A stretch of DNA of 64,000 nt from Klebsormidium nitens (GCA_000708835.1 DF237290.1:1-64000); one strand, 5' to 3'; shown: positions 11,421-63,500, counted from the stretch's first letter. Notes: generated by a model from the letters alone, not told the origin. Translations and numbers: made by a program.

Positions 11421-14400
11421 ATGGCTCTGGGAACTGTGGCTGCCCATGGGGCGTCGTTTGCTGCCCTGCCAGCATCATTGCGCACTTTGCAGAGGGCCGC
11501 TATTCCATTCTCATCTGCCCTTCTTTTGCACCCTCCCATAGTTCTACCAATTCTTTTGAATTCCACTGGGCCGGTGATGGGGCTGCAGAGCACGATTGCA
11601 AATCACACCAAGCCTCTTGTCTTCCAGCCCCTTACAACCTTTCAGGGCAATGACATCTTGCGTTCTGGTTCTTTTCATTCTTTGGATCCGATGAGGGCTC
11701 TTCACACTGTTCTTTCCGAAACAGCATCGCCAGGTGCGTTGAATCACAAGCTAGTGGCGCACGCAGTCAGTGCTGCCAGCAGTCCACAGCAGGCCCTGGC
11801 AAAGTCCAAAAAGGGGAAGAAAGCCAAAAAGCAGAGCGCTGTTGCTAAAAAACCAGCAAGCGTCAGTACTTCCATAGACACCGACAGTCAACTTGGACAG
11901 AGTGAAGCCTCTGAGCCCAGCACCAGTAACAGCGATGAGTTCCCCACTTCCACTGCTGCCAGTGATGACATCATCACTGATATCAGCAACCAAACAAGCT
12001 CTGAAACTCCCCCTGACACTCCTTCCAGTTCAACACCCCACGAACCCTCTGCGCTTGCTAGGCTGTGCGGCAGAAGCGTTCCTGATTGGCTGATAAGAAG
12101 GGCGGAAGACCTGGGGTACGGGACGCCCACCGGGGCCCAAACAGAGGCGCTTCCGCTAGCTCTGCAGGGGCGGGACTGCGTCATTCATGCTCAGACGGGG
12201 TCCGGGAAAACGCTGACTTATCTGCTACCTGTGCTGTCGGGTATAGACCCGAAGCGATCGTCGGTGCAGGCGATTGTGGTGGTGCCGACCCGGGAGCTGG
12301 GGATACAAGTAAATACTGACCGCCAGCGGATGACGTTTTGCAAACTGGGGAGTGGAGGTTTCGCATCCCGGTTCTTTGTTGTGCCAATCAGAGAGTTAAG
12401 GTTAGCGCTAGAGCGTGACATTTGAATATCAAAAGTCGTCCGGACCCATTGAGATTTTTAGGGGAGGCTTTCTAGGGTGACTTCAACAGGGGGTCCTGAG
12501 TAAACAATCACTGGAGGACGCCAGTTACCACCAAACAGAGTTTATGAAACATACTCAGGTCTCCAGTGGTAATTCCTTTGAATCATCTGGTTGAGCGTAA
12601 CGACGTTTGTTGATGTGGATTCTGAGCCGAACTTGGAAAAGACCTCGAGCCGGTGTCTACCTGGGACCCAGCAAGCCAGTCCTTCACAGGCGTCTTGTCT
12701 TGATTCTGTTGCTTTTTAGCACTGATCCAGTCTTTTGGTGACAGGTGGCGCGCGTAGCCCGCCAGCTGGCGGGCAAAGGCAAGGACCAGGTGGCGGACGA
12801 GGAGGCTGCTAACACGAAGAAGCTCAAGTCCGGAAAGATCCAGGTCATGGCATTGTTGGACGGCGCAGGGGGCAATCGGCAAAAGATCTGGCTCAAGGTG
12901 GGGCCCGTCTCTTAATCTCTTCGGGACTTCCCAGCCAATTTGTTCAGAAGGAATAGGAGATTCGTCTCGGTCGGAATGTGAGACAATGTGTATCACAATG
13001 CGCACCTCTTTCATGGGCGAAGGAGCAAGCGACTCAATGTAGGGATAGAATTGCTCATTGGAGTCTACTTGTGGTGAAAGCACTTCTTCGGTTGTTCTGA
13101 TAACTCCGTTTATATTGTATTCTACGGGCTACGAGCACTTCGCGACTTGTTAGGTTCTGGCCGTGCGCTAGTTTGTCTTGAAAGGCAGCCCTTATCTGCT
13201 AGGAATCATGTTCATGGAAGGCCCCTTTCCTGACTTTACAGATCTGTTGCATGGGAGCTTTTGTGGGGTTGGGAACCACAACTTATTTTGGTGCTGGCCA
13301 TCTTCTGTCAAACTTTGCGAAGGCTTTGCAAGTATATCTTGACAAGGGATCCACGGGCATGCGATTCCTGCGCATGATGTAAATGGTTTTTTTCCTCAAT
13401 CCGGTCATTCATGCCTTCGAATTTTCTGAGCCCATCCCGCTTGATGGGCATAGACAGCTCCAAAGTGGCGACATTGTTCAGCTCAAAAAATTTCATATGA
13501 AACATCTAAGCGGGACAGCGTCCGGATCTCGGTGAAGAGACAGATTCTGAATTTCGATGAAGAGACATACATCAGATCCAAGCTGGTAGACTTTTATGTA
13601 CCACAGGCGGACCCCCCTCACCTAGTTGTTGGAACCCCCGACCGGATCCACAAGATGATTGAGTACAGGAACCTGCGCACGAACGGGCTCAAGTTCATTG
13701 TCGTTGACGAGGTAAGACTGACTCTTCCTGTCCTTTCCGCTGGACGTTCTCCTCCCAGAATTGTCTCCCAGTTAGGAGCAGAACTTCTCTCCATCAAGGT
13801 GTCAGCATTTCTTGAGTGACGTCCGCCCCTCCCTTCCCTGCGTTGACGCGAGAGCTGCTTCGAGGTGCATTGCAAAGTTTGACAGGTTGCTGAATTAGCC
13901 AGCAGCGGTCATGCCACCTTGTGCTGATCTGTCTGCTTCCGACAGCTCCCTTCCCAGCAATTTTACCGTATGAACTGATGCGACCCGACTCGACGGGCAG
14001 CCCGGACAAGCTGCCAACGGTTGATTACACTTCGCAGGTTGCCTGCTCTGCTGACGTCAATATTCCGCTAACGGCGCCCGTTTTTCTAAACTGCAGTTTG
14101 ATGCGTATCCTGCCGCAACGCGTACGACGGGCAGCCTGAACAAGCTGCTGACGGTTGACAGCGAAGCCGGCGCGCGGCAGACCATCTTTGCGAGCGCAAC
14201 GGTGCCGCAGCACAACCGGGCAGTCACGGAGCTGGTCAAGAACAAGTGGGCGCGGGTGAGGGCGCGCGATCTTTTCAGATGACAATCTCCCCGTCAGCCC
14301 GTCAGTGACGTTCTGTTGAATGTAAACGCACTGGAATTACCGGTTTACAACGTTAACAGTTCTGCAAAAGCAGACAACAAAAGAAGCAGAACCTCTCCAG

Positions 14401-60500: not shown

Positions 60501-63500
60501 TCACGCGGTCCTGAAAAGTAAGAATTATGCGGTTAGCGACTTAACCACGGCTCTTGAGGGGTGAGAATAATGCTGTTAGCAGCTTAAGCATAGTCCTGGG
60601 GGTTGACAATCATGCTGTCAGCAGCTTGACCAAGGTCTTTCGGGGGTGAGAACCATGCTATCAGCGGTTTAACTGCGGTCCCGGGGGGTGGAAACCATGC
60701 TTCCAGCCGCTTGAATCATGACCCGAAGAACTTCGTGATCCATGGACATTTACAATTTATGCATTTACAATTTATGGAAAACAGAAGAGCCGGAGCGGGC
60801 ATAGGCAAGCATGCTTTTCCGCAGAGGAAAGAGGACAAGGGATGCTGAGAAGGAAGCTTGGCAAACGAAACCAAAGCGAGCAAGCATTTCACATATATCG
60901 ACAATGAGACCCTTGTTTAGCGCAATCTGGCGAAACTTTCATTTGCCAATAAAATGAGGGCGCTCCAGCATTCCGGTGGTCCACTGGAGATGCATTCTCG
61001 CGCTGGATCTCATAATCATAACACGCACGGTTGACTCAACAACTACATTCCGCACGCGTGACCCAACACCAAGGCACGCACAATGGCAAACACCCCTCCA
61101 ATCCGCAATAATACAGCAACGGACCCTCTCCATCACGCCATTTTTGCTGTTCGAGTTGGTCCGTTCAAAAACGCAGCCATATTACCTGCTGCAGTAGTCT
61201 GTGGATGGTGCTGGCGCTCTCCCCCGACTCCACCACGGACGTCCGCACCGAGAGCCAGCTCTGGTCGTTGAGATTGCTCGCGAGCGCGCCCTTCCCTTGC
61301 TCCACCGTCTCTCGCAGCAGCTGGCTCACCTGACAGAGTTAACGGTTCGAGTTTAGAAATGACATAAGCTCAGGGCAGAAAAGTGAGAAGGTTTGAGACG
61401 GTACTATCTCGGTAAGATTGCCCTCGCGCTCTAGCATCTCGGGACAAAGCTACCTCGCCTTGTCGAAGAAGTGCCTTCGATGCTGACAAGAGCAGTTTCG
61501 AAGGTTGAGAAGGGTTTCATTCGTTCACAGAGGTCGACGAGCGCTGTTCTGCGCATGCTACCGAGCGCGCCCTCACCCTGAGTCGTAGTGTCCCGCAACA
61601 ACTGGCTCACCATTTAAGGGATTGCCACGAATGCCTGTTTTATTTCTGCCTTGCTATCGAAGGAGCTCAAAGAATTTTGAGCTGAAGAGTCATGCAACAT
61701 CACAGAGGCTCCGCCGCTGCCCTTGGGCACACACCACCACTTTCAGCGACTGAATCAGTGTGCGGGCTGGCGGTCCCCCTAAAGCACCGGAATATTGGCA
61801 AACCTTGGAGAGGTTTTGTTCTGAAGTACGCGGAGAGGGTACAGAAGAGTCTTGGGACCAATCGAGTCACTGTATCCTCGAGCGCAATAAGGACTCGAAA
61901 AGGACGACAAAAGCCCGTTAGCCGGGCGGATCGCACCGGTCAGCTGAAGAACATAAAGAACGCTCTCTTACTCGAAAGCCCCAAGGACGTCAAAGAGGAA
62001 TCTATGTCTCTTGGTCTAAGATGGTCACCATCAGCTTGCTAGTCCCCCCTTGAGTGCGACCCGTCCGAAGCGACGTCGTCCCCTTCTAGACCTCGACTGC
62101 CAGTCTGAGATAGCTGCCTCGTCAAAGCACTTTCCAACACGTTTGAAACCGTTTCTCAAGATTGACGACCTAAGCTGCTCGAGTTCCGTACCACGTAGAA
62201 GCGCGCCCCGTTGTCCATCTGCCCCACGCTCGCGCGCACGTCGAGCAGCGACCAGAGAAAGTGCTGCAGCCGGTTGGCGGTCGCCTCGTTTTGGCCGCCC
62301 CCGGCGGGGCCCAGCAAACCGGGAAGGAGCGCCAGGAACTGCTGCATGCACCGGCTGGCGCCCTCCAGGTCGCACTGCCAAATGAAAAGGACGCGATGTC
62401 ATGTACTATTGGAATATAATGCTGGAATATGGCGGAGGGCCGGTTGATTTGAATGCCACTGCTGATCGTGTCAGGATTGTAACCCGCCGTTTGCTTGTTA
62501 CCATTGCGGCAACGAGTTGCGATTACCGGAGATCTTCAGGAGCTTTGGGCCATACAACGAAGCTGGTTGCTACAGTCTCGACGACGTTCGCATTCCTCGG
62601 GTGATCAAATATTCCGAGCAACTTCGACTGCTCGATGCATACAGTTCCAGACGTTTCAGTATGAGACGCCAGAACCAAAAGTTGCAAAAAGGGATGGAGT
62701 CTCACCTCTTTCAGGTAGAGCAACACAAGTCTGTACACAATCCTGGGACACCGCTCGCCCCGCCCCTTCACCACTCTGTCGAGCATCGCGCTGCTCAGCT
62801 TCGTCTGGACCCCCGCCGCAAACTGAGGCTGCCCGCTTGTCAACTCCGCCGCCTTCTGCTCCAGCGAGTCCACAAACCCTTTAGCCTTCTCCCGCAGGGC
62901 CGCCACCCGGGAGGAACCGCTGGAGCTTCCCGAGGTGGGCGACTGGGGCGCTGGCAGCAGCCGGGCTTCGTTTCCGCCGGCGCTAGGCCCCTTCCGAATT
63001 CCGTGAATCGCTTCGAGGAGTCTCCAGATCTGGTCGTACAGCGCCCAGCAACTAGGAGTGCGCATGACCATTTTCCCGTTTGCAAACGCCCCACGGAGCC
63101 ATTTCCGCCGGGCTGGCGTGGCGGAGTCCGGCGTTGCCACGTCATAGGATCCGCGCCGACTGGGCGTTTCGGCGGTTGCTGCTCCAAATGAGGTGCGCTT
63201 GCTGGTGACCCTGGGACTGGAGGCGCTGGAACTAGGGGTAGCGGGGAATTCTGCACTGGTAGGAGACTTGGGTGCTGTGTTCTCTCCCCCCATTTTTGTG
63301 GGCGAGAGCAACGACCCCAGACCGACGTCAATGTAATCTCCGGACAGCAGAGCGATATCGGACGACGGTGGATCGTCCGATTGTCGTCGGTCCCAGGATG
63401 GAGGGGCGGGCGAGATCTTTAATAGATCGCCCATTACAAGCTCGTCTGTCAGCGAAAAGATATAAGCGACGCAATCGCGGAGCGGCTGCTGGTTGAGCGC

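Follow-up and report, generated by a model that had tools for sequence, protein, structure and literature searches.

Tandem genomic duplication across an intron-exon boundary is said to have been put forward as a model by Rogers in 1989, and internal gene duplication was reportedly surveyed by Gao and Lynch in 2009. In potato RdRp, a tandem duplication across such a boundary has been described whose branch site, pyrimidine tract and AG were inherited (Ma et al. 2016, PMC4974935), while a review attributes 188 unambiguously identified intron gains to tandem genomic duplication, with Gao & Lynch 2009 among its sources (PMC3443670). The present analysis concerns a 64,000 nt stretch of the Klebsormidium nitens genome (GCA_000708835.1 DF237290.1:1-64000; hereafter the window), in which exon ends, together with their splice site, recur as so-called echoes inside the adjacent introns. 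These echoes share with tandem genomic duplication a short head-to-tail unit comprising one junction with flanking intron and exon, splice signals that the duplicate inherits, and the maintenance of coding through use of one duplicated site with its original partner. Published cases, in contrast, are mostly single events and have been discussed as a source of new introns, whereas here existing introns are lengthened and none is created, with up to six serial copies and about one-fifth of the introns affected. Tandem duplication across junctions is already known; what differs here is its scale, its serial form and the anchored arrays with master-copy dynamics, and full-text literature searches with the genus name returned no description of junction-copy arrays for Klebsormidium. 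More general literature searches for splice-junction duplication yielded no papers beyond those cited here.

Minisatellite-type arrays evolve by unequal exchange, slippage and gene conversion, and the echo arrays resemble them in their in-register growth, age gradient and mosaic patches; minisatellites, however, lack an anchor, whereas an echo array possesses a selected exon border as its fixed terminal master. Introner elements and transposon repeats likewise consist of repeated sequence that adds intron DNA, in this case in an alga, but the echoes copy their own neighbouring exon border and are not dispersed; with regard to introner or transposon hallmarks, self-BLAST of the 64 kb returned a single distant self-match and no inverted pairs. 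Paired-nick work in plants has reportedly also yielded small tandem duplications. Small tandem duplications can arise from fill-in of staggered breaks involving Pol alpha-primase/CST (PMC8355091), which is a candidate source of the founding duplications, although the copies described here are too diverged for microhomology or break structure to be read at the unit borders.

The echoes are probably non-functional remnants of serial, in-register tandem duplications of 42-281 bp across single junctions, which decay neutrally next to a frozen master copy. Duplication of a stretch that spans a junction would leave the exon-contiguous copy as the real junction and place the other copy inside the intron. 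Further in-register duplications of the same unit would follow, for which unequal sister-chromatid exchange or replication slippage is the most likely cause, with new copies arising beside the real exon and pushing older ones outward as the intron lengthens. Purifying selection holds the real exon and its splice signal as the frozen master, and short conversion-like patches may occasionally reset parts of an echo to this master, a pattern that is seen in families J, H and D (described below). Intron lengthening would thereby acquire a readable mechanism in the form of serial copies of an intron's own exon border.

Copies were compared with their parent and with each other. Between real exon and echo, mismatches amount to 14.9% in exon-derived and 34.2% in intron-derived sequence, while between echoes the corresponding values are 36.1% and 32.2% (about 29% and 33% in a recount without the doubtful pair E3-6). 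The exon-derived parts are conserved only relative to the real exon and not between echoes, and the echoes themselves therefore show no conservation. The observation in an earlier note on this DNA that junctions are far better kept than spacers thus applies to real exon versus echo and fails for echo versus echo. That note had also considered a neutral alternative, thought to explain echo polarity and premature stops while not readily explaining junction conservation and mostly synonymous differences; the former holds, and the supposed limit does not, since a real exon frozen by selection, next to which only the echo changes, generates both of these regularities. Set against a parent under selection, a neutral pseudo-copy will give the impression of conservation and of mostly synonymous change without having any function, and the echoes were indeed shown to decay at the neutral rate.

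Exon-border copies and their probable tandem origin

Self-comparison of the window was performed by whole-window BLAST, followed by a more sensitive windowed search. The former returned 16 non-self matches (E-values to 5e-49), of which 15 were direct repeats less than 400 bp apart, one was distant and none was inverted; the latter (E-values to 5e-53) added weaker members of the same clusters. Families were defined by inspection and by banded alignments anchored at the junctions. Tandem Repeats Finder at default settings, for which the echo arrays are too diverged, reported short-period repeats and, among the families, K alone. In total, 12 repeat families were identified in 11 of the approximately 52 introns, between 13,961 and 61,611, each with one to six echoes at periods of 42-281 nt, which bears out the earlier claim that exon ends with their splice sites are repeated within introns. 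The echo units amount to approximately 3.3-3.5 kb of the 28.7 kb of intron DNA (~12%) and make up 40-70% of the affected introns.

The repeated unit includes the real exon border in all 12 families, in which the copies are adjacent and arranged head-to-tail in direct orientation. Ten of these (B, C, D, E, F, H, J, K, L and M) copy an acceptor with the start of the downstream exon, and two (G and I) copy a donor with the end of the upstream exon. The polarity described previously, with acceptor echoes upstream and donor echoes downstream of the real site, holds in every family and follows from geometry together with selection for an intact mRNA, since only the exon-contiguous copy can give a normal mRNA. 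Use of an echo would lead to an early stop, as was also proposed, with read-through into intron sequence meeting a stop within ~20 codons on average.

The real junctions of families J, K and L were set by RNA contigs, while those of the other families were assigned from the frame of translation, agreement with the splice consensus and the continuity of Pfam matches or motifs; positions given below denote the exon-side base of the junction, for the real copy and then for the echoes. Families J, K and L lie on the minus strand in a gene that encodes a BEACH-domain protein (Pfam Beach, E=5.7e-82, plus PH_BEACH and DUF4704), and which had previously been misnamed BchB; the Atlas cluster nearest to the BEACH exon occurs most often in Streptophyta. 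Family J (57686-58309; intron 57788-58635) copies the acceptor at exon start 57787 in three echoes (57973, 58163 and 58289; periods 186, 190 and 126), all with AG present. Family K (60511-60725; intron 60511-61185; exon start 60510) consists of four to five copies of a 42-43 nt unit, each containing a pyrimidine tract and a CTRAC that resembles a branch point, and most of them an AG; the array ends at the real acceptor. Family L (61257-61611; exon start 61329) has one echo at 61610, which has lost its AG, at a period of 281, and no similarity is detectable in its spacer.

Two further minus-strand families occupy the MATE gene (Pfam MatE on an exon). Family D (24602-24827) copies the acceptor at exon start 24643 once, at 24806 (period 163), while family E (27719-28650), in the ~1,348 nt intron 1, copies the acceptor at exon start 27770 at 27885, 27994, 28108, 28234, 28355 and 28633, with a further partial copy near 28486 and periods of 109-126. 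Three more minus-strand families are found in the gene for an AUX1/LAX-like transporter (Pfam Aa_trans), two of them in one intron: family F (35698-35905; acceptor, exon start 35712, echo 35818), with a 106 nt unit of ~91 nt intron and 15 nt exon, and family G (35992-36374), which copies the donor at last exon base 36300 into echo 36128, with GT, and echo 35992, with GT lost (periods 172 and 136). The third, family H (38136-38511; acceptor, exon start 38278, echo 38480), has a 202 nt unit of ~60 nt intron and 142 nt exon.

The remaining families are on the plus strand. Family B (13961-14158), in a DExD-box helicase gene, has its real acceptor at 14096/14097, based on continuity of the motif VVDE/FD (slash, junction) and a weak Pfam DEAD match on the short upstream exon; its single echo at 13961 (period ~136) is decayed, with an exon-derived part at 13961-14024 and the AG lost. 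Family C (15727-16077; real acceptor 16005/16006) has echoes at 15871, with AG kept, and at 15727, where the AG is lost and a new one is present 3 nt downstream (periods 135 and 144). Family M (46011-46215), in a TauD-family dioxygenase gene (Pfam TauD on an exon), copies the acceptor at 46180/46181 into echoes 46100, which is identical for 17 nt across the junction, and 46015 (periods 81 and 85). Family I (50772-51060) lies within YVGHSQ/G, the nucleophile-elbow motif solely for which we take its gene to encode a lipase; the donor after 50802 is echoed at 50923 and 51037 (periods 121 and 114), both with GT. The reported 36/37 match in this gene is close to what reading of the sequences gives, its aligned exon-derived part being identical at 28 of 30 positions.

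A tandem origin is indicated by the extent of homology, as exon-side and intron-side homology together add up to the period in families F (102/106), H (196/202), I (121/121) and J (186/186). Spacers were evaluated as z-scores against shuffles with strict gap costs, cheap gaps giving an identity of ~0.72 even for shuffled spacers, and spacer homology was found in C, D, F, G, H, I and J (z 4-17; for F, z=9.8-16.9). Alignable spacers are 65-70% identical, which is higher than the roughly 60% that had been estimated by eye. Periods differ on average by 15.6 nt within families versus 38 nt between families (permutation p=0.0015), which argues for in-register re-duplication of the same unit and not for independent events.

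The order in which copies arose can be read from several arrays. In families C and I the distances form a star with the real exon at its centre (real-echo 0.17 and 0.18, echo-echo 0.34 in C; 0.15, 0.15 and 0.30, respectively, in I), while in E, J and I the divergence from the real exon grows with distance from it, so that the youngest copy adjoins the exon. The two echoes of family G have derived states in common, which suggests that an echo was itself duplicated. Echo 1 of family J is identical to the real copy over 50 nt of exon and ~10 nt of intron, in agreement with the 59/59 block reported earlier; in the intron part upstream, it matches the real copy at only some 70-77% of positions, and farther out it shares the states of echo 2. 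A test for runs of identity was significant for J (p=0.001, 50 nt run), H (p=0.01, 38 nt run) and D (p=0.01), and revealed no significant run outside these three, with C, E, G, L and B uniform. The run is junction-proximal in H and distal in D, indicating that the patches are not tied to the junction, and the runs in J, H and D are consistent with short gene-conversion patches, as far as can be judged from the pattern of identity. The intron elongation with junction homogenisation that the earlier note had listed among its explanations thus comes near to the picture given by these data, with serial in-register duplication of junction units and with conversion-like patches in J, H and D.

Two ideas as to the nature of the unit were rejected. 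A nucleosome-sized unit is not in agreement with periods that range from 42 to 281 without a preferred value. Seeding by cDNA of a lariat-3' exon intermediate is at odds with the intron part of the units, which at 60-120 nt reaches well beyond the branch-point-like motifs of J (~-20 to -30); only family K fits this idea.

Echo decay and RNA evidence

Identity in the exon-derived part stays level as one moves away from the junction (0.83, 0.78, 0.78, 0.79, 0.78 and 0.75), and no conservation peak at the junction was found in this profile; the step in identity comes ~10 nt into the intron, in a region where constraint acts on the real splice signal. AG or GT is kept in 15 of the 20 echoes, as compared to 12.5 +/- 2.1 expected from the divergence of each echo, and retention is therefore within 1.2 standard deviations of neutrality. 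Pooled Nei-Gojobori analysis of 19 echo-versus-exon comparisons gave a pS of 0.272, a pN of 0.168, a pN/pS of 0.62 and a dN/dS of 0.56. The neutral expectation for a free echo compared with a constrained exon (w ~0.1-0.2) is (1+w)/2, or approximately 0.55-0.6, and not 1, the benchmark that had been proposed as a refutation of function. The mostly synonymous differences noticed earlier are thus real in the pooled ratio, while they do not reflect selection on the echo side: in families with at least two echoes, the three codon positions received 32, 39 and 36 of the echo-lineage changes, respectively (chi-square p=0.73), and this even distribution places the synonymous excess elsewhere than on the echo side. 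Furthermore, echo-lineage changes comprise 49 GC-to-AT versus 28 AT-to-GC substitutions, consistent with decay toward AT, and the youngest copies already contain a stop (H1, TGG to TGA) or a frameshift (C1, 1-nt deletion).

These observations also bear on the proposal that the echoes are dead remnants of once-functional duplicated or mutually exclusive exons, which is scarcely credible. Recognisable peptide similarity, such as QLG(V/I)(V/I)P in the MATE echoes, is what such remnants would display, and our crude gene finder threads echo pieces into a frame-consistent model. The units, however, have one splice site of the exon and never both, the exon share is as low as 3-15 nt (K and F), and the lesions of H1 and C1, the indifference of echo-lineage changes to codon position and the dN/dS value all run counter to a coding past.

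RNA contigs from four runs, each belonging to a different study, were examined over 56001-62000. Splicing in J, K and L takes place at the real acceptors, with contigs joining 57787 to 58636 in four runs, and no splice joint at any J, K or L echo was present in the contigs of these runs, so that the anticipated use of echo AG or GT in RNA did not materialise there. Depth over the J echoes (57801-58600) is zero in all four runs, with an exon depth of 28-116, while other introns in the same runs gave low-depth retention contigs (2.7-9, versus an exon depth of up to 116). In family K, the last AG is the sole one at which contigs are spliced. The echo sites of J, K and L were thus shown to be unused or to be used below contig detection. 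For family E the same is indicated indirectly by the MATE stretch 27431-29337: 16 of 20 RNA runs hold 0.28-0.29 of its sampled words, and its two exons alone would give 559/1907 = 0.293.

The earlier note had favoured a functional role for the echoes, as decoy or poison splice sites that feed alternative splicing coupled to nonsense-mediated decay (AS-NMD) or produce truncated isoforms. Echoes resemble known poison exons and decoys in being intronic splice sites whose use brings a premature stop; known poison exons, however, are conserved and demonstrably spliced, and the echoes are neither. The splice-site contexts of the young echoes J1, H1, D1 and F1 are nearly identical to the real ones, an early stop would follow from use of any of these, three-quarters of the echoes retain their AG or GT, and the share of the MATE stretch present in four RNA runs is slightly greater than its exons account for (see below), all of which would suit such a role. 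That retention is, however, within the neutral range, the echoes are not conserved relative to each other and decay toward AT, the exon-derived part has no junction peak, no contig is spliced at the echo sites of J, K and L, and copy number, spacing and exon share vary widely among functionally unrelated genes. A regulatory echo system is not supported by mutual conservation, coding constraint, excess AG/GT or assembled RNA, and we consider it very improbable; intron elongation is supported, in a neutral form.

Placement biases and other points at odds with neutral duplication

A number of observations weigh against the reading of the echoes as neutrally decaying tandem duplications, or are not predicted by it. 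The first concerns the location of the units: a junction is spanned in every one of the ten families whose unit exceeds 100 bp, and in 12 of the 13 with units >40 bp, and self-BLAST and the windowed search revealed no unit >100 bp in the interior of introns or in the intergenic DNA (~20 kb). When units of the observed sizes are placed at random, those that span a junction account for 0.42-0.44 of viable events if placement is confined to genes, and for 0.25-0.27 if it extends over the entire window. In a forward simulation, duplications were implanted in real echo-free introns, decayed with indels and with constrained sites changing at 0.2 of the neutral rate, and passed through the same BLAST pipeline; the simulated junction share was 0.51, which for ten of ten corresponds to P=0.0013 under a null that leaves out renewal. 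The earlier suspicion that plain geometry is not the whole story is thereby confirmed, in that junction units are over-represented relative to this simulated null. Renewal from the master copy may narrow the gap: a junction family stays detectable longer because its frozen master keeps yielding young echoes, and a two- to three-fold longer detectable life would give P of about 0.03-0.06, with a null share of ~0.7.

Two further biases are not predicted. Acceptor families outnumber donor families by 10 to 2 (binomial p=0.039), an imbalance that might arise if newly duplicated donors are selected against more strongly, or if the mutation process is directional. In addition, all 11 echo-bearing introns are in phase 0, as are 22 of the 41 other predicted introns (Fisher p=0.003; restricted to well-scored exons, p=0.08), and the background share of phase 0 in the K. 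nitens genome may simply be high.

One explanation for these biases is a duplication process that itself favours exon edges by way of chromatin, transcription or splicing. It would be additive to neutral decay, since the echoes would still be dead and the excess mutational, and it appears unlikely, though it is the most serious of the alternatives considered. The junction excess over both the simulated and the geometric share, the empty intergenic and intron-interior DNA, and the acceptor and phase-0 biases are what it would lead one to expect. Conversely, the junction position within the unit varies, with an exon share of ~0.05 to 0.75, a spread that a junction-centred mechanism should not produce; renewal could lift the null share as described; the null rests on crude gene models of our own making; and the data comprise 12 families in one window. 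For the exon-edge excess among founding duplications, master-copy renewal may suffice, or mutation may favour exon DNA. A stronger version, in which intron growth is driven largely by duplication aimed at exon borders, favouring acceptors and phase-0 junctions, so that the arrays are the fossil record of a directed process, is somewhat more doubtful still. If true, such border-aimed duplication would imply breakage or template switching coupled to splicing, transcription or exon chromatin; likewise, the junction, acceptor and phase-0 biases would, if genome-wide, suggest that local duplication is connected with splicing or exon chromatin.

Other points against neutral tandem duplication concern the sequences and the RNA. 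The Jukes-Cantor ratio of exon-derived real-versus-echo divergence is 0.30-0.36, while a frozen master alone predicts 0.5-0.6 (~z=2.8). Gene conversion probably explains this low divergence, given the conversion-like pattern in three families; conversion would be tolerated only from real copy to echo, and the exon-derived part would remain a good conversion substrate for longer. The spacers of B and L are not alignable (z about 0) and that of D is alignable only weakly, so that a whole-unit tandem origin is presumed in these families, as it is for the oldest copies. In addition, the four RNA runs X25, X26, X27 and X5 hold 0.35-0.37 of the MATE words, 6-8% more of this stretch than the exons account for; the additional words correspond to ~120-150 nt, and would represent either partial intron retention or an echo-derived isoform. 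Finally, contigs lose rare isoforms and nonsense-mediated decay would remove echo-spliced RNA, and low-level use of echoes may therefore occur.

Gene models and further observations

Gene models were built with a rough, self-written finder, which in a check against the BEACH gene reproduced five of six RNA-validated exons exactly, the models elsewhere being unverified. Its raw output consisted of giant chained genes on both strands, with echo pieces taken as exons; exons were retained only on the strand backed by score, Pfam or RNA, and echo pieces were stripped out. The resulting models comprise 15.6 kb of exon, ~20 kb of intergenic and 28.7 kb of intron DNA, with an original median intron length of ~450 nt. 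The BEACH exons as defined by RNA contigs are located at 56313-56664, 57098-57787, 58636-59358, 59702-59810, 60248-60510 and 61186-61329, and all introns between them are GT..AG.

A second family of RNA contigs (records 3 and 5, plus orientation) matches the BEACH exon stretches 56551-56637 and 57532-57583 with 4-11 differing letters and then continues into unlike sequence; its probable source is a BEACH-domain paralogue transcribed at another place in the genome.

Echo pieces at 15730-15794, 15893-15914, 36128-36151 and 38442-38480 score as coding, and the finder made them into small in-frame exons. Automatic annotation of the K. nitens genome may hold false exons made from echoes in this way, and gene annotation in this genome calls for care, as echoes look coding and can be threaded into models. 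A five-exon gene at ~30088-34126, which the earlier note does not mention, has no echoes; its exon 33812-34126 strongly matches the C-terminal region of F-box-only proteins (PF19270, E=2.5e-34).

Away from the junctions, the repeat at 1085-1284 is the sole one in the window with a unit >40 nt. Two smaller pairs, a 28 nt x 2 repeat of 100% identity at 47358-47413, between the TauD-family and lipase-like genes, and a 25 nt x 2.2 repeat at 13514-13567 in a helicase intron, indicate that small duplications arise away from junctions too.

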